Below are positions 5,333-46,381 of a stretch of DNA of 64,000 nt, in pieces (the stretch's first letter is position 1; each line of letters starts with the position of its first letter). This stretch comes from Octopus bimaculoides. Taxonomy: Eukaryota. The DNA is taken from assembly GCF_001194135.2 (NCBI RefSeq), contig NC_068990.1, positions 30,176,203-30,240,202 of the forward strand, in the 5' to 3' direction. The position numbers and the translations under genes are program-made. Under the pieces are notes generated by a model. That model was not told the origin of the DNA. It made no database searches and saw nothing but the letters and a program-made list of their open reading frames with translations.

Positions 5333-5655
5333 NNNNNNNNNNNNNNNNNNNNNNNNNNNNNNNNNNNNNNNNNNNNNNNNNNNNNNNNNNNNNNNNNNNN
5401 NNNNNNNNNNNNNNNNNNNNNNNNNNNNNNNNNNNNNNNNNNNNNNNNNNNNNNNNNNNNNNNNNNNNNNNNNNNNNNNNNNNNNNNNNNNNNNNNNNNN
5501 NNNNNNNNNNNNNNNNNNNNNNNNNNNNNNNNNNNNNNNNNNNNNNNNNNNNNNNNNNNNNNNNNNNNNNNNNNNNNNNNNNNNNNNNNNNNNNNNNNNN
5601 NNNNNNNNNNNNNNNNNNNNNNNNNNNNNNNNNNNNNNNNNNNNNNNNNNNNNNN
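5333..5655. other. Assembly gap flanked by (CA)n and (CT)n
   Basis: N run. Confidence 1.
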
Positions 5656-16500: not shown

Positions 16501-18038
16501 TCAACTGGTCCCAACTTGTATGAAGGATGGCAATGTCATTTGAATGCCAAACATGAATGGATGTGAGGAACTAAAAATATTGCATGGCATTTTCTCTGCT
16601 GCTTTCGCTCTCCATTTTACATCAGTCCACCATCTTTACAAAATAATAAAGAAAATCACTTATGACGTAGAATTCTTCTGATTTTCTTTCAGTAAACCCT
16701 TTGAAAATTCTACAGATGTGGCCGGAGAGAAACCAGCCTCAAAAGATACCACCCAACTGGTCATTAATCCACAGGACAAAACTCAACAATGGCTACACAC
16801 TCTTACAGGAAGACAACACAGTTTTGGCTCTGATCTCTCAGCTGGGACCAATTCCAGTAGGTCAGTTATCAAATTTAACACTTAACTTATTATTGTTAAT
16901 TGTTTGGTTTATTGGCTGGTTGAGTGGGTTGGTGTCTTTCTCTGGCTCAGCCAGTGGAGGAGCACCATTGATCCTCTTTGATGCCTCCATGACTGCTAAG
17001 GAGAAGAAGAAGGAGTGGAGTAAGTTTTCCTTTAACCTTGAGACATAACCTGAATGGTTGCAACAGAGTGGCCACCACTGAAGCTATTCAGGACACCACA
17101 TGGAGTTAAACTAAGCCATGGATTAGATCTACCTCACCTCCCATGCAGGTTATATCTTGGTGGTATTGAGATAAGCCTGTATAATCTCCCACTGTCTTTT
17201 ATCAAACAAACTGCAAAGCTATCTCAATAAACTCTACCACCACTACAGCTACTGTGACCATAGCATCATTACCAACATCATCATCATCGTCATCGTTTTA
17301 ATGTCTACTTTTCCATGCTTGCATGGGTTAGACACACTTCATTGAGGCAGATTTTTTATAGCTGGCTGTCCTTCCTATTGCCACCCCTCACTGGTTTCCA
17401 AAGTAGGTAATATTTTCCCAAGGTTGGACATATTTACAAGGAAGATTGGAAATGAAGGCCCTACCTGTAAGATGATGATGATGATGATGATGATGCTTAT
17501 TTACAACTATTATGGAATGTCAGGGCAAGGAACCCCCACCCCTCTCGGAGTGGTTGGAGTTAGGAAGGGCATCCAGCTGTAGAAACTCTGCCAAATCAGA
17601 TTGGAGCCTGGTGTAGCCATCAGGTTTCACCAGTCCTCAGTCAAATCGTCCAACTCATGTTAGCATGGAAAGCGGACGTTAAACGATGATGATGATGATG
17701 ATGATGATGATGTATATACATACATATTTTTATGAGACACGTTCGTGTCCGTAGAACATGATCAATGCTTTATTTTGCTGAACTCTCATTTGTCGTTCAC
17801 AACAAGAGAATCAATCATCATCATCATATATATAAATATATCTTCTGTGTTTTACATGTTTCAGTTATTAGACTGTGGCCATGCTGGTGCGCCACCTTGA
17901 AGAATATTTAATCAAATGAATCGACCCCCAGTACTTAGTTTTTTAAGCTTGATGCTTATTTGATCAGTGTCTATTGCCAAAGAGCTAACTTACAGATATG
18001 TAAACACAACAACAGCATTTGTCAAGTGGCAGTGGTAG

Positions 18039-22295: not shown

Positions 22296-22334
22296 NNNNN
22301 NNNNNNNNNNNNNNNNNNNNNNNNNNNNNNNNNN

Positions 22335-24495: not shown

Positions 24496-26576
24496 CATAA
24501 ACACACTGATACACTTACTCATACATACTCTCACACTCTCTCATATATACACACACTTTACAAAGTCACCCACACGCATACACACACAATGATACATACT
24601 CTCACACTCTCTCATATATATACACATTTTACAGAGTCATGCACACACACATACACATACAGACATACTGATACACTTATACATACTCTCACACTCTCTC
24701 TCATATACACACTTTACAAAGTCACACACACACACACTAATTTATTATTGGAAGCAGCTGGAAGACTTCATTAAAAGACACTAAACTGTCTTCTTATATT
24801 ACTTCTTAGAAGGAATCCAATATTATGAAGATCAATTATTGATTTTTAGCTTTGAATGGAGATCATAAATTTATGGGAGAAATGTGTAGTTAGTTCAATG
24901 AACTCCAGTACATGATTGATGCTTCTTTCATTGGCTAAAGGGGTAATGTGAACTGGACAATAAGGGATATAACTCATCTCTGTCATCCTACTACTTGTGC
25001 CCCTCTTCTATCATCCTGGGTTAACTATAATATTATTGTTTCTTTATGCCAGATCAGACTGGTGCCTGGTGCAGCCTCCTGGCTTCCCAGACCCCAGTAG
25101 GACTGTCTGACCCATGCTAGCATGGAAAACGGATGTTAAATGATGATGATAATGAAGATGATGTCACTCACTAAAAATGTTTTTGTTTTTATTTCCAGCA
25201 TTGACATTCTTTTACAGAGCAGAGAAGCAAATCCTGAAGAAATCCTTCGAAGTCTTGGATTTGGATCTTCCCAAAACGATGAGGTCAAGGCACGGATTCC
25301 GCAACGTTTCTTTTCTGATTCTAAGTTCTGCATTGACGACTTTAAACAAAGATCCGAACTACAAGAACTTTTTGATTCCTGGAAATCTGAAAAAAATTCC
25401 TCAGGTCAGTTTTTAAATCCAGTCCATGTTAGTGAAACCATTCAGTTTTTTTCAGTGAATGAAGTCCCTTCACGTTACATGCAACCGAGCAGTTTGACCA
25501 TGCGGTCAATCATGGGTGCGCAGAAAAAAATTGAAGAAGAAAAAGAAAAGCAACAACAGCAACAACAACAACAAAAGCCATCAGAAGACAAGACACAAAA
25601 TGCAGAAAAAGCTGCTTTATCTTGCAAACTGGAAGAAAACCAGAAATCTCCAAAAAAGTTTGTAAAGCCTTCAGATGTTAATAAACGAATTTTAGAAGAG
25701 ACAAAGGCTTCGGTCAAACATTCTACAAATAAGTCTCACAGTCCTTACCATTCTCCCATACGGAACCCACTCCTTTCAGATCTCACTTTAAATGAAGAAG
25801 CATTCGATGATGTCAGTTGGTCATCGGAATCTAGTATTGCTATCACATCTTACATGAATATCCGTCTCGCTCCAAATGAGACTTTAGTATAGATGGATGT
25901 ACACCTGTTTCTTTCAGTCGTAAGTAGACCACCAAAGTGGTACCATCTCACAGAGCTGCTACTGTCTGTTGCAACATGTAGATTACATAGAGTGCACCCT
26001 CACTTCTCCTCCCAGCATGCAACATTCCAGTAAAATGCTTAAGCAGAGCAAATTTTGTCCTAGAGAAGAGAACATATTTATTACAAAGAGAAAAAACAAG
26101 CAAGCAGGATTGGTATGTCACAGAATAATAGTGTCTATCACAAATTCTTGACAATATGGCATCAATCTGAATTCCTTACCTGAGACAACAAAAGAAAAAC
26201 CAGGTACCACTACATCTGGTACCCTTTGACCTTTGGGTGGTGCGCAGCCAGTATCATATCTCCCTGCAAAATTATGTTTTACCAAAGATTTGCATGTTCT
26301 CCTTCCTGTCTGTGGTAGAATTAGTGCAAAAAAAATGAAGGGAATTTGCAGATATTTTCGTTATTTTGGTTCCATGTCATCTAGATGTGCATGATGGAGA
26401 ATAGTGAAGAAGGTATTGTATTTTTGTCCAGCACCTATTGTTGTTGTTATCATTATTGTTGTTGTTGCAATGATACCTTCGTTTGACTTGAACATTAAAA
26501 CATGTGGAACATCCAATTAAATTCTGGAATGTTCACTACACAGCATTCAAAGAAACTACAACTCCAAATAGACATA

Positions 26577-26608
<32 letters not shown>

Positions 26609-29600
26609 TACATATATGTATATATATATATATATGTATATATATANNNNNNNNNNNNNNNNNNNNNNNNNNNNNNNNNNNNNNNNNNNNNNNNNNNNNN
26701 NNNNNNNNNNNNNNNNNNNNNNNNNNNNNNNNNNNNNNNNNNNNNNTATACATATATATACATAAATATATGTGTGTGTGTGTGTATATATATATATAGA
26801 GAGAGAGTATGTGAGTGTGTATACATCCACATGTACACGCTCCAATTCACATATTTGTAGACGTGTGTGTGTGTATGAAGAGTTTGATTGCAAAGCGCAA
26901 TAAATCCATTTTTACTGAATTGAGAACAATAAGATTTTCTCTTACAAATATTTCTTGAAGGGTCACACCCATAATTTTATTTGTGATTATCTAAACTCTA
27001 TGAAAATATCAAAATCACACATTCCGCTATAATCTAAGTATGCAAGATTTCAAGGAAAATCAATGTATTTTATTGGTTTTTAGTCAAAACGCAATAAATC
27101 CGTCATGTCCTTTTATTGCCAAATGCAATAAATCCAAGCTGTCCATTATACAAGGGTATTTATTAAATTTTAACATTGGGCAGCAGGTAGATCTCACACA
27201 CACACACTGGTTGGAGCAACCGGACATGCAGAGACAATCATTTGTACACAAGACAGTGTACATCTCACACAAACACATGCATGTGGACATGCACGCACAC
27301 ATACACACACACAATGCAAAGATTAAGGGCAGTGGAACAACCAGACAGATTTACACACACATTATGTAATACAACATTGCACACACACACACCCGCACTC
27401 GCTCTTTTTTCTCTCATGCACGCGCGCACACACACACCACACGTGCCATGCCATGCGCTCACGCGCGCACACACACACCACACGTGCCATGCCATGCGCT
27501 CACGCACACACACACACACACACTGTGCCGCATGCTCACACTCCAACACACACACATACTTTATTTTTGTTATAGCCATAAACTGTTTAACTATATCATT
27601 CTAAGTCAACTTAGAATATTAAAATTTGTGTGTACATCCATACATATTTAAGGGTTAATAAGAAAAAAAAGTCCTGCTGTTTTACTTAATGTTTTCAATT
27701 TTCTAGCTTGATGTTCAAATTTGGTCTGTCTATTGACAGAATTCCCACCTGACAGTTACATGTGTGTAATGCTTTCATGAACAAAATTCTAGACTTCTCA
27801 TGTTACTTGATATAATTCAGATTTTCAAAGTATTGGCACAGATAAGCCTTCTCTATTTATGTCATAATACGGATCATTGATATGTGATCAGGATTCCAAG
27901 AACAGTAAAGAATATTCATTTTATTGCTGTTATCCCTGCTTCAACACTCACAGCATGTGTCAATAGACCAGTTCAATAACGTATTCAGATTTTAATGTTT
28001 TATCCTGACAGCCCTGGTAGCCAGCTTTTTTATATGTGGCAGCTAACTGCTTTTCCCCAAAAAAATAATGACAATGCATGTTGCACACATAAGTAAACTG
28101 TTGCTATGTCGGGCTGAGACAAACCTTTGTGGTTGTCAGAAGCATATGGTGTGTTTCACAGGTAGTGTCTTTTTCCAATGGTAGGCTCTTTCCATTGCTA
28201 TGTAAATTTTTGTGGAAAAAGAATCCCGCAGTGTACTTTTTCCTTTTTCCACTTCATATGTTACTTCATCCCTCACTACCCTAAGCGTATGCATTACATC
28301 TGAATTTATTCGTGAACTGGTATATTGGCCTTGAATCTATGGTTCATTTTCTCTCTCATCATCATAGGAAGTGTTACTATTTTCCTCTCGTCGTGTATCC
28401 CATGTATTGCTGAGAGCATGGATATAGAATACATCTTCACGAATACCAATTTCAGACAGCAGCTTTTCCACATCTTTTTTTTTTTCAGTTAACTGTCACT
28501 GTGGGGCTTTAATACTTTATGGTTAGGTTTCATTGCTAACTTGGGAAAATGGGCAGTCCTAAGACATAAAGGTGGGCACAGGAAATGACCCCTCAGAATA
28601 CTGCTTCAGTGAAAGAGAAATTCTAAATTGGTGCTGAGGAAAGTTTAAACTAAAGTCTAGCACAATGATTTGCAACCATTTTTTGTTTTTATCTATAGAT
28701 CCCTTTGATTCCTATTTTATTCTGATGGATCCCCAGAGCTATTTGATATTTTACAGATTCTTCTTTCAAAATCCCTATTTTGTCTCCCACCTAACCACTT
28801 GTGTAAGTCTGCAGTTACGCTCTCATTCAGTGGCCAGAAACATGTTGAGTTATGTAAAACATTAAAGAAAGAAATCTTGCAGTTTCTTGCAATAAATATT
28901 TCTAAAGCAAACTATTTTCTCATGGACCTGTAAACTAGAGTTTACTATTTTGCTTGCATGGACCCCTAAAAATCTTATATGGACCACCAGTTGAGAACCA
29001 CTGGTCTAGCACAAAGAGATATTAAAGGAAAGTTGAGGAAAAAAATAAAATGTTGTTGTTCCCTCTGTTGAACAACAAATGATTTCTCTCTTCAAGAATA
29101 TAAAAGTTCTCTGTATAAAGCATGATTAAAAATGGTTATGTTTTACGGCAGCAAGGAATAGATATGGATTGTGGATGATTTGTGGAGGCTAGAGACAATG
29201 AGATGTGGGTATGTATGATCTAATAGATGTGTAAAGTTTATCAGAATGAGCATCTGGGCATTAAAGACATCAACAAGAGTGTGAAGAAGAGACAACTTCA
29301 CATGTATGGCATGAATGGTCATGTGATGCACTTGAACAATAAGTATGGCATGTAAAGTACCATTAGTGGAGAAAAGATGTCTGGATTTCACACAAGAGCT
29401 GACAAAAGACCCCCAAGACAGCATTGTGTGTGTGTGTATCATAGTACTGACCACGTAAAAAGCACCATTCGAGCACGGTCGATGTCAGTGTCACCTGACT
29501 GGCTCCTGTGCTGGTGGCACGTAAAAAGCACCATTCGAGCACGGTCGATGCCAGTGTCACCTGACTGGCTCCTGTGCTGGTGGCATGTAAAAAGCACCAT

Positions 29601-30473
29601 TCGAGCACGGTCGATGCCAGTGTCACCTGACTGGCTCCTGTGCTGGTAGCATGTAAAAAGCACCATTCGAGCACGGTCGATGCCAGTGCCACCTGACTGG
29701 CTCCTGTGCTGGTGGAGCATAAAAAGCACCATTCAAGTATGGTTGATGCCAGTGCCACCTGACTGGCTCCTGTGCCAACGACACGTAAAAAGCACCCAAT
29801 ACACTCTCAGAGTGGTTGGCGTTAGGAAGGGTGTCCAGCTGCAGAAACCTTGCCAGATGAGATTAGAGCCTGGTGTATCCTTCTGGCTTGCCAGTCCTCA
29901 GCCAAACCATCCAACCCATGCCAGCATGGAAAGCAGACATTAAATGATGATGATGATGATGATGATGAACGACCTTATACACACATATGTGTGTGTGTGT
30001 GTGTTCTTTTACACTGATTGACAACTGATGTTAGTTTGTTGACATTCCCCTGACTTAGCAGTGATAAAAGAGACAGATATACATTACGGTTGGCCTGTTC
30101 AGTGATGTGCCGCAGCAGCAGCAGCAGCATCATGTCTGAAGTCCAATGAATGAAGCTTTGATAACAGGTAGGCTAGATCAAGGCTAACCTGCAGTTGGTT
30201 AATATTTAATTGAGCTACACCATCAGTAACAGAACTAGAGATTAGTAATAAATCCTTATTAAGTCTATCAAAAGTTTATCTCTGAACTTTGATCCAGATA
30301 TGGTATCTATGTTGGTGTTTTATAGAAGAAACAGTCTGCTTGTTTCCATCATGATATTGTCCATTTAATATGGGGATTAAGGTAGACTATGGTTTACTTT
30401 CAATTATAATACCCAACGTGTATACTAAGATATACATATGTCAGGTGTGTGATACTTTCTTTACCTTTGGCTA

Positions 30474-30524
<51 letters not shown>

Positions 30525-33500
30525 CATTTAAACAATATATTATCTAAAATTAAATTGTAAATTAGAAGCAATCTAAACGTTAACGCTGTCACATGTATAT
30601 ACAATGTATATATTTTGTTTAAACATTTATTAGCTGCGGTATTTTGTCCAGGGAAAATTCCCTTTAACCCTTTCATTACCAACCTGGCTGAAACCAGCTC
30701 TGGCTCTGTAGTGCAAATGTCTTGTTTTTATAAGTTTTGAATTAAAATCTTCCACCAAACTTTAGTCACAATTTATGTTCCTAACACTAGCTTAATGATA
30801 ACTAAGTTATTTTACTAAATTCTTTGTTATATTTAAAGTAATTGAAAGAAACACAGCATCTCAACAGAAATACAGTAACAAAAGGGTTAAGACATCAAAT
30901 GTTATAAAAAAAAACACTGAATATCTCTGAATACCAGACAAAACAAAAGGTGAATGAGGATGGTGGATATCAATATTTTGTTGTTATTTCAGCTCGTCAG
31001 CACCGTATACTTGAATCTCACCTCAAAACAAATTTGGATTACTGGTCTGTGGTATATATGCAAATAGTGTAAAATCTATCTGCTGATGTGTAACAATGCT
31101 GCACAAGTGAAACAAAATTCAATTTTGAATCAGAAGTAACTCAAATAATGTACACATTCACTGTGTGACATTGGTCATGTTGACAATATTATTACTTGTT
31201 TCCCATCTTCTTTTAGTCCTATCTCTTGTCCTCTGAGATTCTTCTTTGTAATCCACTCTTCGTTCTCTTCTTTCCCCAGCTTTCTCTTCTTTCCCCAGCT
31301 TTCTCTTCTTTCCCCAGCTTTCTCTTTTTTCACCATTGTTCCTTGTATTTCTTGGTCTTCTTCTTCTCTTTACCTTCTCCTTTCTTTCTCTCTCTCAATA
31401 ATCCTATTATCATTGTGATTACGTTATTAAAAGCGACATGTCAGAAGTGTTCTGTAAGCTTGGCTCTGGTTAAATTCCTAAAATATTCATAATCTTTTGT
31501 CATTTGTTGTTGAAAGAATGGCCTCCAGCTAATAATAGTAATACTTGGGTGAAAAATGTCAAGATTTTCTTTTTCCCGCTCTCTCTCTCTCCCTCTCTCT
31601 TCATCTTTCTGTCTGTTGTCCCTCTCTACCAGTCTCTTTCTTTCTTTCTTTCTCTTCTCTTTCTCTCTATCAGTCTATCTCTGTCTTCCATCTCTCTCTC
31701 TCTCTCCCTCTCTCTGCAATGACAACAATAGTTTATGAGCCAATGGTCTTTCAAATTGCTAGAAGCATCGACCAAATTATCCTAAAATATTAGACCCTAT
31801 CACCTTAAAAAAGGAAGGACACATTGGACATTGTATTCCTAGCTACACTATGTCTGAACAAAAGATGGAATGGGCATGGTGGAATGCCTTTCATCGAAGC
31901 TTTCACTTGATTAGAGCTGACCTACTCCTCCACTTGCCACTTCTAGTAGCTCCAGCTGGGAGTGAAACCACAACTGCTTCATTCAGTTTCCCGCACCCTC
32001 CCACCATTGGTGACTTTTCTGTCCTTGAAAATATCTTGTCTTTTAGTTGTTTCAGTCAGTGTGCTGCAGCCATGCTGGAGCACCACCTTGCAGGGTTTGA
32101 CTGAACAAATTGGATCCGGTGCTTATTTTCCAAGTCTTGTGCTTTTGGTCTCCTTTGCTGAACTTCTAAGTTATAGGGACATAAATAAACCAATACCAGT
32201 TGTCAAGTGATGGTGGGGAACAAACACAGACATGCGCGCGCGCACACACACACACACACATATAGATAGATAGACAGACAGACAGACAGATAGATAGATG
32301 GGTTTTTGGGTGGGTGGGTAGAGAGATAGATGGATAGGTAGATAGGTAGGCAGGTAGGCAGGTGGATAAGTGGATAGATAGATAGATAGATAGATAGATA
32401 GTGGGATATATANNNNNNNNNNNNNNNNNNNNNNNNNNNNNNNNNNNNNNNNNNNNNNNNNNNNNNNNNNNNNNNNNNNNNAGAGAAATACATGGGTAGG
32501 TAGGCAGATAGATAGATAGATGGGTAGATAGGTAGGTAGATAGATATTAGGTTGATGATGCTACCATATTTAAAGAGTTTATCTCAAACAACTGCCACAC
32601 TTTGTCCTACAATAAATTTATTCTTGTTATTCAAGAGATTTGCCTTTCTGCTTAAGACTTTATCTAAAAATCACACAAAGACTGCCTTATGAAATATTTG
32701 TCTTTGAAACATTTTTTTTCTTTTTCTTTTTAACTTTCTATTTTGGAAGTGCCTTACAGTTTCTGTGATTATTCAAGCTAGTTCCTGTTTTAGTTCTTTC
32801 TGTTTTTTAATTTTTTGTCATAAATTATTTATTAATTTTAGTGTCCTATTCCAAGTAGAAGCTTATTTGTTGGTTTTTTTTTTTGTTTCTTCCCATACTA
32901 CCAAGAATTATTAAAGTTTTCAATGCCAGTCAAAATGTAATGATGTAATGGCTAAAACAGACACAGCCAAGTGCCAAGAGATTCTTCAATGATTACATAA
33001 AAGAAATAGCTACTGACAAACACCCTTCAGTCAGTTATGCTTCATTAACCTTTAACCATTGTACTGTGATCGGAGTTTTCTGTTTCTTTTGATAGTCATC
33101 CACATTAGAATAGTACTCTCATAATCTAATTAATTCTCTTAATTTAACTCTGAGTATCTGTTGTTCCTATTTCTTAAACAGAATACACAATAATGTAGAG
33201 GCTGCAAACCTGGGTATTGCTGCCCATTATGCAGACGAGAAAAATAAACAAATACAGGGTCCTGACCAGCTATTATTTGTTTCTGCAGTCGGAAACTCAG
33301 GTGTTCTCAAACCTCACACTGCTTATTTCCTCTGCAAAATCAGAAGAGTTACAGCCTGTCTGAGAAATGCAGACGATCATCAGTTTATTTATTTTATTTA
33401 TTTCAAGATATTACTGTTATAATCTGTCTTGTAGTGTGTGTGATCCCTGTAGCAAATTCTCAGTAAACTAAGTCTGTGACTCAGGTTTCGTCAGTGATTA

Positions 33501-36500
33501 TAGCTATTTCATAATCTCAAATGATACTATTCAGGAAATTTATGAACATCACATCTACCCGTCTGCTGTCAACTATATCGTGGTACTCCATCAGTTGCAA
33601 CGATGAGAGTTCCAGTTAATCCAATCAATGGAACAGCCTGCTTGTGAAATTAACATGCAAGTGGCTGAGCACGCCACAGACGCGTGTACCCTTAACGTAG
33701 TTCTGGGGGAGATTCAGCACGACACAGAAATACAGGTACAACAGAAATAGGAAGAGAGAAAGTTGTGGTGAAAGAGTACAGCAGGGTTCGCCACCACCCC
33801 CTGCCTGAGCCTCATGGAGCTTAATGTGTTTTTGCTCAATAAATACTCACAAGGCCCAGTCTGGGAATTGAAACTACAATCCTATAACTGCAAGACAGCT
33901 GCCCTAACCACTGGGCCATTGCACCTCCATGCCGTCTACTTAAAACATGAAGAATGATCCATTTGTGATTATATATCTTCAACAATGGAATGTGAGGCAA
34001 TTGACCTAAAATATTTCACTTATCAATGAGATAAAATTGTTTCCAAGAAAAATTCATTCTCTTCTCATTATCAGTGTTTTAAATTTGTTCAAATGTCACT
34101 TTTGAGTTCTGTGTCAAATTTGATATTAACTAATGTTTAAAATTTGTTTCTTTTCCAAGAATTCGATATGTAAATAATACAGTGGTTTTAATTTCCCAAA
34201 ATAATGCTATTAATATATTTTGGTAAAAGTTAAAAGTGGTGTATTTTAAGTTGTTGCAATATGAGGAAATTTAAACTATTGAGTAAAGTCCTTGAGATAT
34301 GTCATGGCTGGGTCGTCTCTGATTGTCAGTCTGCTCACTCAGGGCTGACTTGGGTTTAGAGCTAAACAACAACAATAATGGTGATAAGACTTTTTTTTTA
34401 AGTATAGGGTTATTAGTAACCCTTCAGCACTCAAATTCCTCTCTCAAATGTAATGCTTATGTATTTAAATTTTTTAAAATTAATCATGTGTTACCTTGTA
34501 GCTTTGATATTTCAAAGATGTGATTATTTTTAGAATGACATTGCAGGATAGGTATGAGAGACTGGATCTGTCCAGTGTGGACATAAACCAGTTAAAATTA
34601 TTGGACCAAATATGGCTGGTTTAAATGCTAAAGAATTAAATGGCTGTTTGATTTTCACAAAGGGTAAATAAGAGACAAAGTATTGTTCCTATTAAGCTTA
34701 TATTGTAATACAAACCCCTGTAAAGAATTACCTTACAGACAATGGATAAGGGAAGTTAATTGGCCCTTTTCACTTTCATTGCTGTCTTTCTTGATTTTGC
34801 TGCTTCCTGTCCCCTCTTTTACTATTCTAATAAGTTGTGTACCTGAGCACTGCAGGCAATAAGCTCGTTATTATTGTTCTTGTTGCTGATGTTGTCATTA
34901 AAGCAGCAAGCTGGCAGAATTATTAGTGTGTTGGGCAAAGTGCTTAGTGGCCCTTCTTCGACCTCATTATATTCTGAGTTCAAATTCTGCCAAAGTCACC
35001 TTTGCTTTTTATCCTTTAGAGAGTCAATAAAATAAAGTTTCAGTCAAGTACTGGTGCCAATGTAACTGACCTCTCCCCTCCTCTAAAAATTGCTGGCCTT
35101 GTGCCAAAATTTTTATTATTATTATTATTGTCTTAAGGTGGCAAGCTGGGAGAACTGTTAGTACCCTGGATGAAATGCTTAGCAGTATTTCACCCATCGC
35201 TACATTCTGAGTTCAGATTCTGCTGAGGTCAACTCCACCTTTCATCCTTTCGGAGTCGATAAATTAAGTACCAGTGAAATACTGAGGCTGACGTAATTGA
35301 CTAATCCCCTCCCCTACATTTCAAGCCTTGTACTTTTAGTAGAAAGGATTATCATCATCATCATCAATAAGCAACTGATATCATTATTATCAATAAGCAG
35401 GAGATCAGGCCTAATTCCTTTGTCACAAAAACAGTCTGATAAAATGTGAAGGTGATAAAGAGGTAGAAGATGAAAGAGTGGGATCATTTTTTTTTAATTT
35501 CAGTTTTTGTAAACAGACTCACCACTAACGTCAGGTTTGCAGTGCTCCCACTGCTTGCAGTTGTGGGCCATACAACTCTGTGATACCTATTTACAGCAAG
35601 TTAGACTGGAATATTGAGTTTCAAAAAGTATTAGGGATTGGTACTGTACCATACTCAGAGATAAGGTACTGGCTATCTGGTACCATTGGCTTTTCTGTAA
35701 TCCCTGCAAATTATAGACTCACTTCTGTTTCAGCAATGTTAAAATTATAAAAACCCATCTCTTTTAGTAAGAAGCCACCTTTTGTTGTGATACTTCAAAA
35801 GAACTTGTGTAGCATTCACCTGCAAATACTGTCCAAATGACTGTGTATCACCGTCTTTAGCATCGATGACTTTATGGCCATTATTTGTTGTTTCTGCATT
35901 GTCACATTTACCATTTTTTTATTTTGCTTCTTTAGTTTATGTTTGCTTATGTGTGCTTTTCATTTCTTATTTTTCCTTATTTCTGTGGCATGTTTGTGCT
36001 TTTTTTTCTACTTGTTTGTCTAGACCAATTGATGCAGCACCCCTCGTTAGGGCCCTGCCTTCACCGTCTAGGGCTTTTGTCGTCTGTCCAGTCACAACCT
36101 TGTAAATTGCCAAGAAGTAGTCTTACATCACCACAAAGCATATTGATTCCAGACAACCAGAAGGCCCTTGCTGCTCAGGGTTACTATGAATACCCTTCAG
36201 TGATGGGTGGCTTAAGAGAGAACTCAAAACAATCAATCCTTCCAGCTTCTGAACGACGCAAGAATTTCAGGAGTACACGCACCCAACAGACCTGGTCTTT
36301 GATAGAACCAGAACAAGAGGCAGAATCTGAATTGCAGAAGTTAAAACAAAATAAGCATAATTTTGGAGCTAGTATTGATTCTGCTCTAAGCAGTGACCTA
36401 GAGAACTCTTTAGAGAGAAGAAATTGGCAAACCTATTCCAGATGGGGTTTCCGGAACCAGCCAAGTAAAGACAGTGAATCCAGTACTTCCAGCCTTCGAG

Positions 36501-37201
36501 ACCTTCGCTTAGGACATGTAAATAAATTAATGAGTTTTGAAGAAACTGATGATGACTGTGAGGTGTTTTCTCCTTCAGAGAATCACAGAAGAAATTTAAA
36601 TAACAAAAGTAATGGTTTCCAAAATCCAGAAGCTGAAATATGTGATAATTTTCAAAAGACTTCTTTAGAAACAGATCTTAATTCTGACAAACAAACTGAA
36701 AGTGGATTTGATTTCAGGCATGGTGCCATCATTGATTCTTTAAACAATATCAATGACTTAATAAAATATTCAAAGTCTACAGAACCTTCTGAACTTGAAG
36801 TGTCTCTGGCTTCTGCTGCTTCCATGGATATATTACACAATGGTGGATTAACAACAATATCTGCAGAAGAGGCTGATTTTAGTGATTATCCTGCAAACAC
36901 GGTGAGTCATTCCATTCCTGTTCTTTGTATTTTGTGATGACTTTTATTGTTGGTGTCATATTTGGTTCATATTTCTGTAAAACTTTTAACACCTTTTCTT
37001 CTCCATCTTTAATTGTTTCTTGAGTTTCTATAGAATATGTGTTCTATAAATGCTCTTAACACACCTTACACTTGTAACATTTTCATATTCGAAAAATACA
37101 ACAGTAAGCTACCAATTTAATATGAAGAATCTTTATTAGAAATCTAACTTTGAACCCCTCCCCCTCAAAGTAAAGGATGAAATAGAATTCAACCTTTTCA
37201 C

Positions 37202-37277
<76 letters not shown>

Positions 37278-37340
37278 ATATGTATATAACAAATTTAACT
37301 CTCTTTCTCACTCTTCTCTATTTATACAACATATTTTAGC

Positions 37341-37377
<37 letters not shown>

Positions 37378-40300
37378 ACAATTTCCTTTGTACACTTGAT
37401 TTATGCTGTTCTTTTAGAATGTGTAAACATATTTAGTTTTAGTGGAGGTTTTTGCGACACTAAAAAAAAGAAAGAAATAAGAAAAGAAAAAAGAAAGAAA
37501 TTCTTTGATAATTAGTTACAAATTTATTTGTTACTGCTGCCTAAAACTTTTGTCTTTTATTTTATTATACCCTTTTTTTGCTTTTCCTTATTCCTCCTCC
37601 TCCTCATAATCCTCATTCATTAATTTACTCCATGTTTGTCTGGATTGTATGTGTCTTCTCCTTTGCAGTACCATGCCACATGTTGCTGTCCTTTGTCACC
37701 ATTGACAATGTAAGATCAGCCGTTATCACTTTCCCCTATATCTTCCCTGGTTTTCTCCCATTCCACAATTTCCTGCCACTCAGATTGCTTAGACCTTCTT
37801 TGCTCAGCTCTTTCCCTCCATATCTATCAGGTGTCTCTACCTGCAGAGTCTCTACCTGCAGAGTCTCTTCTCATCTGATTCCTCTTATATCTAGTTTTTC
37901 TCCCAATTCATTTGTGCTCCAGCATTCAATCCCACTTTGCATTATGCATCCAGTGGAACATGCTGACCTCATTTCTTTCCAGCCTCTTGACACACTTTTT
38001 CAAGAAATTCTTTGACATGTTAATCTACTGAGAATTGGGTTGGCAACAGACACAAGTTACCATGAATTTCATTTTGGTGTTTATGGCCTGAAGAACTTAG
38101 AATAAACAAGACAGACTGAGAACTGGGTCACCAGCATTCTGAAATTCCCATGTATAGCTGATCTTAAATTCTTGTGCTTATTTCTTTATAACTTGGACCA
38201 TCTCACATTTCTGATTCTGTTGTTGCAGAGTATAGGTAACCCTCTTAAGTAATGTGTCATTTCTCTTCCATCAACTCGATATTGTTCTTTGTTTCCCCTC
38301 TGATTACCAGTATTTCCAGGCCTGCATCTTTTAGCTTTTATGACTGGCCTACATACAACCTTCTGAAAACAAACCTTCATACTCTCTGTCAACAGATCTG
38401 ATCTGAGATTTTTACGGAAGATTGTTTCAATCAAGCCCTATCTCTTCTTTCTTCTCATCACATCTATCTCCTGGTCTTTCTATAAACCCACTTATGACTA
38501 AGGGGTCCTTTCACCTTCATACTTTCCTTCTCTACATCATCCGTGTCTATCTAACCCCTCATGTTACTAATTGACTTGTTCTATTGCTGTATTCTTCACT
38601 GGATAAAAACTGTATTTACAGCCAATTGGCTTTCTTCCTTGCTGAAAAGTATGAAACCTATCTGGATTGCATGTTTACCTGATATCCAGGTGATCAGATG
38701 ATTGACCAGTTTCTTGAAATTAGTGTTGCAAATGATTAGGTCATTTCCATTACAGAATTCCAAAAGATTCAGCTGTCTTCATTCCTTGTATCATATCCAT
38801 TCAGTTAGGCATTCTGGTGTTGCCCAACATCTCCATTAACATCATTGGTTGTGATAATGAATCTCATAAAAACCTCAGAAGAAAGTTAGAGAAATGGTTC
38901 TTTTGCACGCCTGTTAGACTTGTTTGCAGTACATATGCAGATGTGACCAATGCTATCATGTTGCCTATGGCTAGTCTTGGCTTAGTCTGTCACACATTCT
39001 GACTACCTCAATTATTCTATCAATTTCTTGTCAACAGTATACCTACTTCACCCACCCAGAAGAATTTGTACTTGTATTTTTTGCCTGTGAGATGTCTGAT
39101 TGAGGCTCTCCTCCATCTTGCCACTTGCACACCACTTGCATCTACTCATTTCTACTCTAGTAACTCTACACTCTTTCTAAACCATCATGACTGTGTTGAT
39201 GGTGGTGTCTATTAAATTTAGCACCTTGTAGGAAAAGAAGAGTTGTACAATGTTCATCTTCTGGGTGCAGTCATTTGATGACAATTGAGAAGTTTTCACA
39301 TCTGGCCCTCCCACTAACATGGTGTTAGTGTTGTACATGCAATGACAGCTTCCTTTTTATTTTATGATTTTATGATTGCCATATTTTTTGGTATGTATTT
39401 TGTTTTGTTTTGTTTTGTTTTTTTACAGCTGGATGCTTGGTTATCAAATTCTCTACAAAATAGACTAGACATACTATATTGTGCCATGAAAGTATTCTAA
39501 ACAGTTTGTTTTCAGAGTTACTGTGCTGCTAGGTAGGTTGCCTTCCCTGCAGCTTGTGGAGCCTATGTCTCTGTTGTGTGATAAGGCAGAACTCTTATTG
39601 TTAACCGTTGGGCCTGTTTGGATTTCCTAAAGTGCTTGATGGATTACCTCTGTTCCTGCAAAACCATGCTTCTCCATTGTGTTGTGGGAGGAAAAGGTTT
39701 GTGCAAGATGGCAGACACCTCTTAGTCTGCAGCTGGAGTGAAGGCATGTGGCCAAGTGGTTAGGCTATTTAGCTCACAGTCATAAAGTTGTAAGTTCAAT
39801 ACCTAGTAGCAGTGCATTGTGTCCTTGAGCAAACGTATGATCAAAGGCATTCCAGGCAAGAATAGCTTGTCTTTTATTGAGCCATAGTGTATCTAGGATC
39901 ACATTATCAAATATGCTTTCCCTTATTTAAGATGACTGGTAGGGAGGCGAGAGAGATTTGACTGCTATTTCTAGCAGATTAAGTGACCTTGTAGAGGCTC
40001 TCTCATTATTAATCTGGAGTTGTCTGCGTTGTAGGTACAAATGTGAAACAACTTCAGAGTTGTTTTGAGTTGATTAAAATAATAATTTACAAGTAGGCGT
40101 AGGAGTGTCTGTGTGGTAAGTAGCTTGCTTACCAACCACATGGTTCCGGGTTCAGTCCCACTGCGTGGCACCTTAGGCAAGTGTCTTCTACTATAGCCTC
40201 GGGCCGACCAAAGCCTTGTGAGTGGATTTGGTAGACGGAAACTGAAAGAAGCCCGTCGTATATATGTATATATGTGTGTGTATGTATGTTTGTGTGTTTG

Positions 40301-43300
40301 TGTTTGCCCCCCCCCCCCCAGCATCGCTTGACAACCGATGCTGGTGTGTTTACGTCCCCGTAACTTAGTGGTTCGGCAGAAGAGACCGATAGAATAAGTT
40401 CTAGGCTTACAAAGAATAAGTCCTGGGGTCGATTTGCATGACTAAAGGTGGTGCTCCAGCATGGCCACAGGTAAAAGAGTAAAGAGTAAGTGTTGAAACT
40501 GGTTTTTGCTTTATTTGATTAGTTATATTTTATTAATGATAAATTATTTGACCAAGCTTGGATTCAGATTTATCAAAAATTGATGTAGCAAAGAAATTCC
40601 ATTTTCCATATTTTTCCTTTTTAACAACTTCTAGAAAGAAGTACGCAGACTGAAGATTGGCGCTCAAAGGAACCGTGAGTATTTAATTTACTGATTGAAG
40701 TTTATTGGTGTGACACATATACGTATCATCATCACCATCATCGTCGTTTAACGTCCGTTTTCCATGCTGGCATGGGTTGGACAGTTTGATTGAGGACTGG
40801 CGAGCCAGATGGCTGCACCAGGCTCCAATCTGATTTGGCAGAGTTTCTACAGCTGGATGCCCTTCCTAACGCCAACCACTCCGAGAGTGTAGTAGGTGCT
40901 TTTACGTGCCACCGGCACGAAGGCCAGTCAGGTGGTACTGGCAATGGCCACACTCGAAATGGTGTATTTTACATGCTACCTGCACAAGAGCCACTCCAGT
41001 GTGTGTGTATGTGTGTAGGGATGTATGTATAAAGTGTGTATATTAAGCGTTTTCACATCAACCTACCTGACATCACCCCTGGTTCTTCAATGTCAACTTC
41101 CTGTTTTAAAGTGAACTAAATTAAAACTTTCCATCATAATTTCTTGTTAATTTACATGCAGGTATGGCTGTGTGGTAAGGAGCTTGCTTCCCAGCCACAG
41201 GGAATCCCACTGCGTGGCACCTTTGTCAAGTGTCTGCTACTACAGCCTCAGGCCAACCAAAACATTGTGAATGGATCTAGTAGATGGAAACTGAAAGAAG
41301 CCCATCGTATTTATATATTTGTGTGTGTGGTTGTCCCCCACCACTGCTTGACAACTGGTGTTAGTGTGTTTACATCCTTATAACTTAGCAGTTCAGCAGA
41401 AAAGACTGATAGAATAAGAACACCAGGCTTCAAATAGAAATAAGTTATGGGCTCTAACCATTTAACTAAAAATTGTTCAAGGCAGTGCTCCAGAATGGCC
41501 ACAGTCTAATGACTGAAACAAGTAAAAGATAAAAGATGGAAGATAAGCTCCAAACACCAGTTTAAGAAAGACAAAATTATTTTTTACTAAATTCTTCATT
41601 ATTTCCAAAATTAATTGAAATACAGTGTATTTGAAGAGAAACAGGTTAGCAAACGAGTTAATTAGCAAAAGAGTTAATTAGAGATGTATATTTAAATGCA
41701 ATGGCATATCTTCTGCACAAAAAATGAATTTGTTGAACATTATAAAATGGTAAGCCTAGACATTATTTTAACAAAGATAGACTTGTGTTGTATGAAATAA
41801 ATGTCAATTTTCACTGACACTGTTTTGTACTTCAAAGAATGTTGGATTAACCCTTTCGTTACTGTATTTATTTTGAGATGCTCTGTGTTGTTTCTTTCAA
41901 TTAATTTTAAATATAACAAAGAATTTAGTAAAATAACTTAGTTATCATTCAGCTTGTGTTAGGAACATAAATTGTGACTAAGGTTTGGTGGAAGATTTTA
42001 ATTCAAAACTTATGAAAATAAGACATTTGTACTACAGAATCAGAGGCGGTTTCAGCCAGGTTGATAATGAAAGGGTTAAGAATTGTTTCTCTATTATATA
42101 TTTTAAGCCTTTTGTGACCATATTTCTGTTGATATGCTCTGTGTTTCTTTCAATTTAGTAAAATAACTTGGTTATCATTAAGCTAGTGTTAGGAACATAA
42201 ATTGGGACTAAAGTTTAGAGGAAGATTTTAATTCAAAACTTATGTGAACAAGACATTTGTATTAAGAACCAGAACAGGGTTAATGAAGATAAAAGAGAGA
42301 TTAGTGTATAAAGGGTTAATGAAAAGAAAAGAGAGATTAGTGTATAAAAAGAAAGAAGGATGGGATTAACAACTGAATTTTGTTGTTGAGTTTCTTAGGT
42401 GTTAGAGAGAGAGAAGAGGTCAAATCTCAATGTGGAGAGGCAATTGGATCCTTGAGAGGCTGTGATTGTGAAAGGCAGACAGACAGTTTGGTGCTGCCAG
42501 GCCTAAGTAGTGTTTGGTCTGAAGTTTAGAACACTTTTGTCATCATATTTCTGTTGAAATACACTGGCTTTGTTTTAATTAATTTTGAAAATAACAAAAA
42601 AAAATTTAGTAAAATAACATTGTCCTCATTAAGCTGATGTTTAGAGCATAAATGAGAATGTAGTTTTGATGGAAGGTTTTAATTGAAATCACATTAAAGT
42701 GGGAAGTTTATATCATAGAACAAGGGACAGTTTCAGGTGGGGGGATTGGTATTAATAGAGTTAAGTTTGAAAACCTCTGTCAAAATGTCTCACAACCTTT
42801 TTATGAGCTCAAACATTAAAATCTCAAGGATAGACATATAATTCTATGTAGTATCTGCTTCTGCTTTACTGGTTTCTCATCTCACCACCAGGTGGATTTT
42901 ACCTTCCATCTCTTAGACAATCAATCAACAATAGCTCTTCTTTGCTAATGAGGAGTCAGTGTAATTTTGTGTTGATTTTTATGATGCTGTGGAGTTCATG
43001 GGATGCCAATGTATCAGTTTGTACTGAGATAGATTAACCGTTTAGCATTCAGGTTACTCTGTCAGATGTGGCTGGCACCCCAATGGTTACGATCACACAG
43101 GTTCCAGTTGATCTGGTCAACAGAACAGCCTGCTTGGGAAATTAACGTGGCTGAGCACACCACAGACATGCATACACTTGACACATTTCTCATGGAGATT
43201 CAGATTGAGACACAGCATGTGACAAGACTGGCTCATTTTGAATTACTGGTCCTACTCAGTTTTGCCAACTGAATGGAGTGGAGCAATGTGAAATAAAGTG

Positions 43301-43925
43301 TCTTGCCCAAGAACAGATCGCACTGTTGGGAATCAAACTCACAACCTCACAATCCTGAGGTGAATATCCTCACCACTAAGCCATGGCCCCTTCATATTGT
43401 TTTGAATGAATCATGAATTTACCTCAGTTTTGAGACTTCAATGACAATGTAGAGTAGGGGTGAGAGGCCAGATCTGGCCAGTTTGAACAAAACCAGATGG
43501 AATATTTCGACCAGAAATGGTTGGTTTAAATGCTAAAGAATTAAGAGACTGACCATGAAAAATTGAGGACAGTGGGGATGTCTGAAAGCAAGAAAGAATG
43601 TGTTTACTTGGGTGTCTTAAAAACCATTTTCTAAGATCTAAGTTAATGTCCTAAAGCATTTGGGAGAGTGTGCCAGTTTGTCAAAGATACCATTTCCATG
43701 AAGGTCTGGTGCTTCTTCCTCAGTAACATGAGTTTGGGCATCTTGAATGGTTTAGACAAAACAAAGCACATGCAGTAGATTTGAACTCAGAACCCTTAAG
43801 CTAGCAACTCAATACTTTATCTGTTCAACCAGTTTCCTTTCACAGCAGAAAACCTGAAATCAATTACTTTGTCTAGATGCCGCTACATGGGCTAAGTATT
43901 TCTTCAAGTTACACACACACGCGCA

Positions 43926-43980
<55 letters not shown>

Positions 43981-43990
43981 NNNNNNNNNN

Positions 43991-44036
<46 letters not shown>

Positions 44037-46254
44037 CCTCCCTCTTTTATGACTTGACTTTTATAAAATTCCCAAAATCAAATGCCACTTCTGTAGGTGC
44101 TTTTTAATCAGTTAAAGTTGCAATCTCAATATATTATCTCTACTTAGGTTTGCTAATTTTATGATAAAGGTCACAAGTTAAAAATCTTCTCATCATTATA
44201 ACAGTGTGTCCTGAAACAAAAGACACATTACTTGTTAAAATCTAGAGCAAAAAACTTTGAAAAATAATTATTGTTAAAATGTTAAAACCCCTGACACTAA
44301 ACTGAGAGTGACCTTGAAGGCAGGACTAGCTTCTCTCTGGGCACTGCTGCTGTTACTGCTGGTGGTGATGGTGATGAAGCAGAGAAAGAGAAGAGAAAAA
44401 AAGATGCATTTGTCCAAATGTGAATTAATTTCTGGGATTTAGCTAACTGATGTTACCCACATTGGTAAATAATTTTTTTTTTTTTTTGAAAGTTCATATA
44501 AAGCACAGACACTAGAACTTAAATGTTGATGCTACGAATGGGAAATGATGAAAGAAATGCAGGACTGCACAGGTAAAATCCATGTTGGTCTGTAGATGCG
44601 AGTGTTCTGGTACTAATTTGCAGAAAAGGTCAAGAAGACATTTGGAGCTTTTCCCCAAAACACATATTGTGTACAACCTACAAATGAATGAAGCGAGTTT
44701 GACTGAGATCCATGCTACTACTGTGGCAACTTATGAGCTGCCAGAGGAACATGTAAGGGGTTGCTTGATACATTAACTCACACTTTGAATATGTGTGTGT
44801 GTGTGTGTGTGTGTGCCAGTTGTACGTAAAAAGCACCCACTACACCCTCAGAGTGGTTGGCATTAGGAAGGGCATCCAGCTGTAGAAACCTTGCCAGATC
44901 AGATTGGAGCCTGGTGCAGCCGCTGGCTTTCCAGACCTCAGTCAAACTGTCCAACCCATGCCAGCATGGAAAACAGACGTTAAACGATGATGATGATATA
45001 TATATATGCACATACATATATCTGTCCACTGATTTATATATATTTATAGATATATACACATACATTCATTTGTCCACTAACCTACATACATATATCTACC
45101 TAGTGACCCATACACACACACACACACATGCACATGCACACACACACACACACACATGCACACACACACACATACATATATGGGTCAAGGGCAGACAACA
45201 ACTAGTAGGTCTCTTGGCATCAGTGATGGAGACAGCAACCTATGTTGTAGAGTGGAATCTGGTAACGTATCAACAAAGAAGATGAATCTGTTATTATGGC
45301 CAACAGATAATGTGGTGGAATGGGATGCGAGTGAAGAGACGATACTATTGTTCTGTCATCCACTCTTGTGTATACACTGTAATAATAATAATAACAATAA
45401 TAATTTACATACCGGACCCCTTCAATAAGCTTGAGTATCTTTTTAACTACTTAGTTGCCATAAAACTTTATGCTTTCAACTTTATCTCCATGTTGTCACT
45501 GTACATGCTTATTTATTTTCATTGGAAATGTTAAATTGCACTAATTATACAACAATAAATGGTTTTTCTGTGTTGTGGGCCATTTTCGTTGTCTGTTTTG
45601 GGGAGAAGGTGTTTTTCATTATTTTTTGTTTTTATTTGTTATTCGTTTGTTTATTCATTCATTTGACATTTCTAAAAAGTGTCCTCTCTTTATTTGACTC
45701 ACTACATTTTTGTTTTTGCACAGCTTCTATCTACCGTATTGGAAGTGCTCAGTCTGATAGCAGTGGTTATGTAGAATCTGACAGTCTGGTGGAGCCACCA
45801 ATGTCGTATCTTGATGCATTATCAGCCAATGATGTAATTATGGGTTTTTTTTTTACTTTCTTCTTTCATTTAAGACAAAAAAAATTATTTTACAGACTAA
45901 ATTAATATTAATCTGTGTTTTAATTTTACTTCAGATTCTGTCTTTAATCCTTTTTGTTTTGCTGCTGTCACCCCACATCATCATCATCATCATCATCATC
46001 GTCCTTAAGCTTAATTTTGTGTCTTTTGTTCCCTGAGTGGCCCTAATTGTCTCCCTGCATCACCTCCACCTCTTTTCCACCCGACCTTTGCTTTACCCCT
46101 TATGTACATGCTACTCCCCTCACAATGGTAAAGGTTAATCCTGTAGGCTCCCAAACTGCTGCTTATCTCATTAAAAACAAGAAATATATCCAGGTTTATA
46201 TTGCATACAAATCAGGTATACACATGCACACATATGAATTTGCACCTAGCCATG

Positions 46255-46288
<34 letters not shown>

Positions 46289-46342: not shown

Positions 46343-46381
<39 letters not shown>

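Follow-up and report, generated by a model that had tools for sequence, protein, structure and literature searches.

KRAP immobilises IP3 receptors (IP3Rs) and 'licenses' them for Ca2+ puffs (PMC8302619), and Tespa1 has a related job in T cells (PMC5472764). A double-Phe motif in the N-terminal region of both proteins (F187/F188 in Tespa1, the N-terminal FF in KRAP) is needed for IP3R binding (PMC5472764, PMC11234384). The PDZ ligand of SynGAP is toggled by C-terminal splice isoforms, alpha1 among them (PMC3621422, PMC7314543). In GIV-L, the long isoform of GIV/Girdin (CCDC88A), a PDZ-binding motif, conserved across invertebrates and vertebrates, is encoded by the intron that follows exon 31 (PMC8042451).

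We analysed a stretch of 64,000 nucleotides of Octopus bimaculoides DNA (NC_068990.1, positions 30,176,203 to 30,240,202; hereafter the window), which carries a KRAP/ITPRID-like locus with an ORF of 250 aa at 25140-25892 (+ strand, frame 0). Its exon at 25199-25892 is quite likely a dual-use ('composite') exon, in which use of an internal splice donor would give a long product and read-through a short one, a putative switch involving a PDZ-anchored adaptor. Reading of the sequence places the exon start at 25199, after the acceptor ttatttccag/C (pyrimidine content upstream of 0.83). The 5' part of the exon, at 25199..25404 (+), would be common to both isoforms. It is spanned by the O. vulgaris model P0006 and encodes the N-terminal half of KRAP_IP3R_bind (NPEEILRSLGFG...RIPQRFF...ELQELF). 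This part belongs to the KRAP/ITPRID family by a narrow, borderline match to Pfam PF14722 (residues 4-40, 27.1 bits against a gathering cutoff of 27, E-value 4.7e-6). The O. vulgaris orthologue scores 31.2 bits. When this orthologue and the distant relatives were scanned, ten proteins in all, nine scored between 31 and 47 bits and the tenth (P0010) fell under the cutoff at 21 bits. RIPQRFF (25293..25313, +) is the most conserved block, with R-I-P-x-R-F invariant and R32, P34, R36 and F37 being invariant columns in alignment A3. This block is probably the counterpart of the double-Phe motif through which KRAP and Tespa1 bind IP3R, a putative match.

An internal 5' splice site, CAG/GTCAGT, is located at 25402..25410 (+). 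It is in phase 1, with its GT at 25405-25406, and agrees with the consensus at 8/9 positions (C at +3). The G/GT across the junction is part of a conserved Gly codon. The site has the character of a functional 5' splice site within a longer ORF: a phase-1 GT on the homologous Gly was found at 12/12 loci, as MAG/GTCAGT in ten and with GTATGT in two, and the O. vulgaris model CAI9729381.1 (1011 aa) uses it, joining the equivalents of 25404 and 36024 (...KNSS/DQLMQHP). The annotation behind that model drew on Iso-Seq and RNA-seq together with protein alignments and ab initio prediction. Just 42% of the Gly codons of these ORFs are GGT, and the locus offers a clean example of a splice donor limiting codon choice (GGT-CAG) across long evolutionary distances. 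RNA structure around the donor gave no signal (z = -0.19). A second, acceptor-like sequence (tttttttcag) ends at 25455 and closes an in-frame GT..AG unit of 51 nt (25405-25455), a candidate mini-intron or exitron. Its tttYtttcag is kept in decapods, the same stretch encodes a conserved QF[FL]S, and L006 shows no tract of this kind.

The next exon of the long isoform is predicted at 36024..36901 (+), behind a phase-1 acceptor (ttgtttgtctag/AC), the G at 25404 plus AC giving Asp. Residues 211-504 of P0006 match this exon with 93.9% identity (tblastn), and an orthologous ORF (P0004) is 80% identical to it. Phase-1 acceptors that open the homologous next exon were also found in L006 (at 14108) and L008 (at 11325), where G+AT likewise gives Asp, so that the matching acceptor is present in three taxa (octopus, L006 and L008). 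A tblastn search with the octopus downstream exons over 10 kb downstream of the decapod locus L001 gave no match; the next exon is not reached there.

We considered that the gene might end at 25892 everywhere, with the sequence from 36024 onward belonging to a neighbour and the 1011-aa O. vulgaris model being a fused artefact. That the O. bimaculoides models terminate at ETLV would agree with this, as would the Pfam results for the downstream exons. The earlier note had described the full-length form as carrying an SSFA2_C coiled coil, and Pfam detects no such domain in the long isoform: SSFA2_C had no match in the O. vulgaris long model P0006 (E<=0.01), in its last 211 residues (E<=10) or in single downstream exons, and no KRAP-related domain of any kind was detected in the downstream exons. 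A near-consensus phase-1 5' splice site that is conserved at the nucleotide level at 12/12 loci is, however, hard to explain if nothing is spliced to it. In three distant taxa the next exon follows on this strand behind a phase-1 acceptor, at a distance of only 0.4-3.4 kb in two cases, and upstream of it there is no separate start that is in frame at the acceptor. Vertebrate KRAP likewise consists of an N-terminal IP3R-binding region and a long C-terminal part (PMC8302619). We therefore consider two separate genes unlikely, and similarly unlikely the idea which that reading entails, that the conserved GGTCAGT reflects something besides splicing.

If the donor is not used, the frame stays open for 162 codons (a count that includes the split Gly codon beginning at 25404) up to the TAG at 25890-25892, and the segment translates as EEEKEKQ8KPSEDK...LAPNETLV. 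The earlier note had reported this open frame and judged it improbable by chance, and both statements hold. Stop trinucleotides account for 5.5% of the window, giving a probability of ~1e-4 for 162 open codons, and 0/20,000 shuffles of the segment were still open. The read-through ORF ranks third longest among the open frames of the + strand.

The read-through tail (25405..25889, +) is the predicted alternative C-terminal region of the short isoform. Colinear ORFs ending at the same place were found in two decapods, two other octopods and at least seven distant relatives. Seven distant metazoan loci are contigs from ENA and Logan assemblies (ERZ24900295, ERZ25069859, ERZ25072999, ERZ25072384, ERZ25069853, ERZ26052378 and SRR26493809). 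Tail open frames vary in length from 125 to 374 codons across lineages, and the twelve proteins or loci that share the stop position are 24-51% identical. A word-indexed protein search with the 12-sequence alignment, swamped by low-complexity words, added one match (P0030, from the second octopod).

Two blocks of the tail are conserved. Block 1 (IQFFSVNEVPSRY, 25440..25478, +) has the consensus [FY][LI]xxxxVPxR[FY], in which P90 is invariant and V89 nearly so in alignment A3. AlphaFold placed a helix at residues 74-86, just ahead of this block (mean pLDDT of 84 for residues 81-90), in a model which was built from the 12-sequence alignment and whose overall pLDDT of 58 was too low for a fold search. 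Block 2 (SHSPYHSPIRNPLLSDLTLNEEAFDDVSWSSESSIAITSYMNIRLAPNETLV, 25734..25889, +) shows codon changes among octopods and is nearly invariant relative to decapods: among three octopods, 0/52 codons carry non-synonymous changes and four carry synonymous ones, and the DNA just past the stop has 6-14% mismatches. Distant relatives carry the pattern SWSSxST...RL[SA]PxE[ST]LV. Between the two blocks, the Q8 run (25551..25574, +) is a lineage-specific low-complexity insert. The run is Q3 in another octopod and five codons shorter in the octopod L011, and decapods have polyP in its place; the polyQ of the 'polyQ-tailed' short protein is not conserved. Searched alone against Pfam with E-values up to 10, the tails matched no family. 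Peptides that fall within the predicted tail include SPYHSPIR, DLTLNEEAFDDVSWSSESS and LAPNETLV.

Divergence across the tail has the pattern of protein-coding DNA. In the C-terminal block, octopus and decapods differ at 0.21-0.25, 0.06 and 0.53-0.59 of first, second and third codon positions, respectively. Indels within the tail ORF are of 6 and 15 nt only, and the first indel past the stop is of 4 nt. Because divergence is biased to third positions, indels are restricted to multiples of three and the C-terminal block has no non-synonymous changes, the region after the donor is, on this comparative evidence, coding sequence under purifying selection that ends at a conserved stop, rather than an intron that is open by chance.

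This constraint bears on the idea, raised in the earlier note, that read-through yields an NMD-coupled 'poison' retained intron that merely lowers the output of the long isoform. Such an intron would have a premature stop in sequence without protein-level constraint and a tail peptide without function, and here strong constraint on the protein sequence of the tail extends all the way to the stop. A functionless tail would not be expected to hold an open frame of 125-374 codons or two conserved protein blocks, nor an invariant stop and third-position-biased divergence across lineages that are only 24-32% identical. The location of the stop far upstream of later exon junctions, if no polyadenylation occurs nearby, would suit a poison isoform, as would the finding that poly(A) hexamers are not enriched past the stop. 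Taken together, we find it very unlikely.

AATAAA and ATTAAA hexamers occur after the stop at background density in all loci, and in L008 neither is present in the 421 nt that separate the stop from the next exon. The first such hexamers in octopus lie 602-1235 nt beyond the stop (ATTAAA at 26494 and 26516; AATAAA at 26899, 27093 and 27127). The three AATAAA hexamers lie within exact copies of GCAATAAATCC at 26897, 27091 and 27125 (26897..27135, +), 1.0-1.2 kb past the stop, which are candidate poly(A) signals of the short mRNA. Only 0.05 occurrences were expected, and two of the three copies are exact in O. vulgaris. All three had been listed previously, the first at its correct position and the other two one nucleotide too far downstream (27092 and 27126).

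The short isoform would end in E-T-L-V (25878..25889, +), in agreement with the consensus of class I PDZ ligands, [S/T]-x-hydrophobic-COOH (free C-terminus, [S/T] at -2 and hydrophobic V/I/L at 0). All 12 of the 12 ends fit this consensus (...P-[NDG]-E-[ST]-[LMW]-V), with termini of ETLV, ESLV, ETMV or ESWV. E227 (-3) and V230 (0) are invariant, and the third base of the Val codon varies freely (A/T/C/G). The position of the stop (TAG at 25890..25892, +) is conserved at 12/12 loci and its identity is not, being TAG, TAA or TGA. We infer from the four-residue consensus that ETLV is a putative ligand of PDZ domains. The invariant stop position would then be explained, because PDZ ligands require that the carboxyl end be free. 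We also examined whether the final Val codon could conceal a phase-0 splice donor (L/GTN-stop) and rejected this: GTATAG, GTTTAA, GTCTGA and GTGTGA fit the 5' splice site consensus poorly, the third base of Val is free to vary, and a phase-0 donor would be out of register with acceptors in phase 1.

Cephalopods edit their mRNAs extensively, and in O. bimaculoides frame 0 is open for a further 46 codons beyond the TAG, both of which would favour recoding of the stop (A-to-I editing of UAG to UGG, readthrough or frameshifting) to extend the protein past 25892. Past the stop, however, octopods differ from one another by indels that are not multiples of three (4, 3, 2, 7 nt and others), and therefore no downstream frame is conserved. 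Decapods have TAA followed by unrelated sequence, and conservation stops exactly at the stop codon. We give hardly any credence to recoding.

An artefactual stop was proposed in the earlier note, in which a G missing from the assembly at 25880 would make 25199-25919 one in-frame exon (...PNEDFSIDGCTPVSFS) spliced at 25920. It is true that a base inserted anywhere in 25878-25889 links frame 0 to an open stretch that ends at GTAAGT and is in phase with exon 36024, and, as the note had it, this rescue frame is open only from 25880. We compared the orthologous exon in other cephalopods and beyond, and the stop falls on the same codon in each of 12 independent assemblies, among them the chromosome-level O. 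vulgaris assembly and those of another octopod and of two decapods. O. vulgaris and this other octopod have 4 nt fewer past the stop, so that the rescue frame is missing from both, and GTAAGT is GCAAGT in O. vulgaris. The conserved final residues E-T-L-V would also be lost. With the stop conserved in relatives, we see practically no chance of an assembly indel.

The same comparison bears on a proposed 27-nt microexon (25893..25919, +), for which the TAG at 25890-25892 would serve as acceptor and which would link 25404 to 36024 in the full-length mRNA. The features on which this was based are present in the sequence: the O. bimaculoides unit measures 27 nt, runs from phase 1 to phase 1, reads DGCTPVSFS in another frame and is followed by GTAAGT (GTC/GTAAGT, 25920..25925, +). 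However, ATGG at 25893-25896 is an insertion specific to O. bimaculoides that is absent from O. vulgaris and the octopod L011. In both of these the unit has 23 nt, which breaks the frame, and decapods have no counterpart. The supposedly perfect donor is not conserved either, being GCAAGT in O. vulgaris, where the preceding CAG is CAA, with nothing comparable in squids. The polypyrimidine tract upstream of the TAG is weak (pyrimidine content 0.44 vs 0.83 at real acceptors), and in the O. vulgaris model the exons on either side are spliced straight to each other. A conserved coding microexon is thus highly improbable, and 25893..25919 is best read as non-coding (3' UTR or intron).

The dual-use exon accounts for these observations as follows. 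When the donor at 25404/25405 is used, the exon would end there and join 36024, giving a long protein of ~1000 aa. When it is skipped, translation would run on to the TAG at 25890-25892, adding 162 codons of a largely disordered tail in which the two conserved blocks lie. The short product, of ~370-430 aa, would keep RIPxRFF, the putative IP3R-binding block, and end in -E-T-L-V-COOH. The 3' end of the short mRNA may form by cleavage and polyadenylation within the downstream intron, as opposed to simple retention of that intron. The ORF and its splice signals are conserved at both the nucleotide and the protein level, which suggests that both mRNAs are made in O. bimaculoides. If ETLV binds PDZ domains, the product may switch from a long scaffold to an IP3R adaptor anchored through PDZ.

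Each of the two forms is represented among public gene models. Three O. bimaculoides UniProt/UniRef models (371, 424 and 427 aa) have different 5' ends and share the ending APNETLV, and the long form is represented by the 1011-aa O. vulgaris model; this evidence comes from gene models that may be partly ab initio, for the short form in O. bimaculoides and the long form in O. vulgaris. The donor, the read-through tail and the stop position are all conserved from octopus to distant invertebrates, and therefore both proteins are probably made: a long scaffold and a short protein with a PDZ-ligand-like -ETLV end. The core proposal of the earlier note, that one locus gives a full-length and a short isoform, is thereby strengthened. 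As a lesson for annotation, the O. bimaculoides short models and the O. vulgaris long model may both be right, each describing one of two conserved outputs.

More tentatively, the invertebrate KRAP/ITPRID gene may carry an ancient bifunctional 5' splice site and conserved Gly-Gln codon pair that switches between the long scaffold and an undescribed short adaptor with a PDZ ligand. This possible route of IP3R positioning would be new and would predate the split of cephalopods from the other invertebrate lineages sampled. If true, the short form could tether IP3 receptors to PDZ scaffolds at the membrane or synapse, bypassing the C-terminal region of the long form, and the KRAP family would gain a new conserved module and the field a new means of positioning IP3 receptors. 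Should invertebrates make the short form from a single KRAP-like gene, this would be an unexplored way to place IP3 receptors at PDZ-organised sites, and the tail motifs VPxRF, SWSSxST and -E[ST]LV would become testable handles.

The secreted and membrane forms of immunoglobulin mu arise from a composite terminal exon, or intronic polyadenylation, switch. The proposed octopus switch is alike in opposing an exon-internal 5' splice site to read-through with downstream 3'-end formation, giving a common N-terminus and different C-termini. It differs in that the octopus donor is near-consensus (8/9) and not obviously weak, and its poly(A) sites are candidates. As in SynGAP, alternative 3' processing would decide whether the protein has a class I PDZ-ligand ending; SynGAP does this by alternative acceptor or exon choice near the normal 3' end, whereas the octopus donor is embedded in a long ORF. 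GIV-L is similar in that a scaffold gains a conserved C-terminal PDZ-binding motif only on intron read-through. It belongs to another gene family, and its read-through lengthens the protein slightly at the gene's 3' end, whereas in octopus a 162-residue tail would take the place of ~800 residues of downstream exons. The likeness to vertebrate KRAP/ITPRID2 (SSFA2), ITPRID1 and TESPA1 consists of the PF14722 match and the RIPxRF[FL] block in the octopus exon. The long form of ITPRID1/2 has a C-terminal SSFA2_C, which was undetected in the octopus long form. No Pfam model recognises the octopus tail, with its VPxRF block, SWSSxST block and -E[ST]LV end, and the KRAP and Tespa1 papers that we consulted do not describe a tail of this kind. 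In vertebrates, long KRAP coexists with a separate IP3R-binding paralogue, TESPA1, a pair which resembles the proposed long and short octopus proteins; unlike TESPA1, the octopus short form would come from the same gene as the long one, when the internal donor is left unused.

The exon that begins at 25199, preceded by ttatttccag, contains a phase-1 donor (CAG|GTCAGT, GT at 25405) beyond which the frame remains open for 162 codons (EEEKEKQ8KPSEDK...LAPNETLV) up to TAG 25890-25892, as an earlier note on this DNA had described. The 27 nt after the TAG, which encode DGCTPVSFS in a different frame and precede a GTAAGT at 25920, are also present, and the acceptor of the exon at 36024 is in phase 1. 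Stop trinucleotides make up 5.5% of the window, giving a probability of ~1e-4 for 162 open codons, and every one of 20,000 shuffled versions of the segment was interrupted by a stop. The protein encoded by the ORF is identical in sequence to O. bimaculoides UniRef entries named 'ITPR-interacting domain-containing protein'; the three models (371, 424 and 427 aa) vary in their 5' exons and all have the C-terminus APNETLV. The 427 aa model (P0029) includes as an extra exon an ORF segment at 16682-16882 (+), KPFENSTDVAGEKPASKDTTQLVINPQDKTQQWLHTLTGRQHSFGSDLSAGTNSS, which has no Pfam match and is missing from the two other O. bimaculoides models and the O. vulgaris model. Given this restricted occurrence, it is a possible alternative cassette exon.

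The open segment had been regarded as an intron, however comparison with relatives identifies it as coding sequence with a conserved stop. Two decapod-like cephalopod ORFs from the protein search (P0002 and P0003; 42-46% BLASTP identity to octopus) are colinear with octopus throughout the putative intron and stop at the same codon, with ...LRLAPNESLV followed by TAA. With DNA threaded on the protein alignment, octopus and decapods diverge by 0.21-0.25, 0.06 and 0.53-0.59 at codon positions 1, 2 and 3 of the C-terminal block (25734-25889), the hallmark of a protein under purifying selection. A profile search covering 1.84 billion representative proteins added nine more-distant relatives (P0007-P0015; 24-32% identity to octopus), all of them single genomic ORFs of 198-469 aa ending in ...[SA]-P-x-E-[ST]-[LMW]-V, and at the DNA level the homologous codon is a stop (TAG, TAA or TGA) in all 12 loci. 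This protein-level conservation of the tail contradicts an unproductive retained intron with NMD.

Among O. bimaculoides, O. vulgaris and another octopod (locus L011), the C-terminal block (52 codons) contains four synonymous and no non-synonymous changes, and mismatches reach 6-14% across the 600 nt directly downstream of the stop. Indels are of 6 and 15 nt within the ORF; after the stop, the first is of 4 nt, followed by 3, 2 and 7 nt. Together these differences indicate that coding ends exactly at the TAG. The downstream frame is not conserved, which argues against recoding of the stop via editing, readthrough or frameshift. A donor on the final Val codon was rejected for its poor consensus and wrong phase.

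The proposal that the TAG serves as acceptor for a 27-nt phase 1-to-1 microexon (25893-25919) did not hold up. Both O. vulgaris and L011 lack ATGG (25893-25896), leaving 23 nt and a broken frame; the supposedly perfect GTAAGT reads GCAAGT in O. vulgaris, with CAA in place of the preceding CAG; and the tract upstream of the TAG is 44% pyrimidine, against 83% at two real acceptors. In decapods the post-stop sequence is AT-rich and unrelated to octopus. An assembly error with one missing G is excluded by the octopod ATGG/GCAAGT differences and the decapod sequence, and would also destroy E-T-L-V, the most conserved residues. The Q8 run is not conserved, being five codons shorter in L011 and replaced by polyP in decapods.

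The donor coincides with a Gly codon whose residue hardly varies among the aligned proteins. This codon is GGT, forming a phase-1 5' splice site, in 12/12 loci: CAG|GTCAGT in five cephalopods and the distant relatives L008 and L010, AAG|GTCAGT in L006, L007 and L009, ACG|GTATGT in L016, and CAG|GTATGT in L017. Since just 42% of Gly residues in these ORFs are encoded by GGT, and 51% of Gln residues by CAG, the constraint acts on nucleotides, not amino acids alone; the conserved 'Gly-Gln' would seem to be a side effect of keeping the splice site. RNA structure near the donor gave no signal (z = -0.19). In L006, phase-1 GTCAGT sites occur at both 10254 and 10284, a spacing of 30 nt (CCA|GTCAGT and AAG|GTCAGT); they are possible tandem alternative donors, 10 codons apart. 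A 51-nt in-frame GT...AG unit occupies 25405-25455 (GTCAGT...tttttttcag) and both decapods share one (GTCAGT...tttctttcag); its third-codon-position divergence (0.28-0.33) is below that of the rest of the ORF (0.44-0.72). Candidate explanations for the unit are a mini-intron or exitron, sequence by the donor that regulates splicing, or simply the conserved QF[FL]S codons.

The next exon is reachable in three taxa (octopus 36024, L006 14108 and L008 11325), each with a pyrimidine-rich phase-1 acceptor and a G+AY (Asp) junction codon. The annotated O. vulgaris model CAI9729381.1 (P0006, 1011 aa) reads ...SWKSEKNSS|DQLMQHP..., equivalent to 25404 joined directly to 36024; that annotation drew on Iso-Seq, RNA-seq, protein alignments and ab initio prediction together (PMC10700109). 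A reading as two separate genes, with the O. vulgaris model a fusion, is unlikely, since in three taxa the exons are neighbours on one strand and the pairing of phase-1 donor with phase-1 acceptor is conserved. The remaining long-isoform exons lie on the + strand at approximately 36024-36901, 45723-45836, 46442-47212, 48218-48286, 49497-49625, 51042-51194, 52712-52963 and 54514-54582; an exon for P0006 residues 505-518 was not found among them. Pfam has no match in the 36024-54582 exons, so the SSFA2_C label given to the C-terminus of the long isoform is unconfirmed. Downstream of the gene, a 126-aa ORF at 61240-61617 (+) contains a pair of weak matches to C2H2 zinc fingers (E ~2e-3, under Pfam cutoffs) and may be a fragment derived from another gene or a mobile element.

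We propose that the exon is composite: use of the internal donor would give the long protein, and skipping it would give a short protein with the same N-terminus, including the RIPQRFF block at 25293-25313. This block probably corresponds to the KRAP/Tespa1 double-Phe motif, which is required for IP3R binding by both proteins (PMC5472764, PMC11234384). The tail, covered by no Pfam model, is mostly disordered by prediction (AlphaFold pLDDT 58; a single fairly confident helix, residues 74-86) and has conserved blocks at 25440-25478 ([FY][LI]xxxxVPxR[FY]) and 25734-25889 (...SWSSxS[ST]...RL[SA]PxE[ST]LV). In 12/12 sequences the tail ends in four residues that conform to the class I PDZ-ligand consensus, [S/T]-x-hydrophobic-COOH. 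PDZ ligands of this class require a free C-terminus, which for the putative ligand here would account for the fixed stop position. The most divergent relative, L008 (10001-10903), ends in TVTESWV and has no SWSS block; just 421 nt separate its stop from its next exon, an interval without a canonical poly(A) hexamer. The tail in this lineage may be evolving differently or decaying.

Poly(A) hexamers downstream of the stop occur at background density. GCAATAAATCC, each copy of which contains AATAAA, occurs three times within 240 nt on the + strand (26897, 27091 and 27125; span 26897-27135) against 0.05 expected, and is absent from the rest of the window; O. vulgaris has exact matches to two of the copies. 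The copies may be a local repeat or poly(A) signals. The window has nine N-run assembly gaps (5333-5655, 22296-22334, 26647-26746, 32413-32481, 52011-52214, 60300-60962 and three 10-nt runs), several bordered by (TG)n/(TA)n microsatellites; the one at 26647-26746 falls inside the candidate 3' UTR/intron of the short isoform, where the sequence is therefore incomplete.

Both the KRAP/ITPRID family and the read-through-exon switch to a PDZ-ligand C-terminus are already known. The literature searched contained no description of such a switch in this family, nor of the conserved tail and deep donor conservation. Precedents for the device proposed for the octopus short isoform are GIV-L, in which the PDZ ligand is intron-encoded (PMC8042451), and SynGAP alpha1, which acquires its PDZ ligand by alternative splicing.
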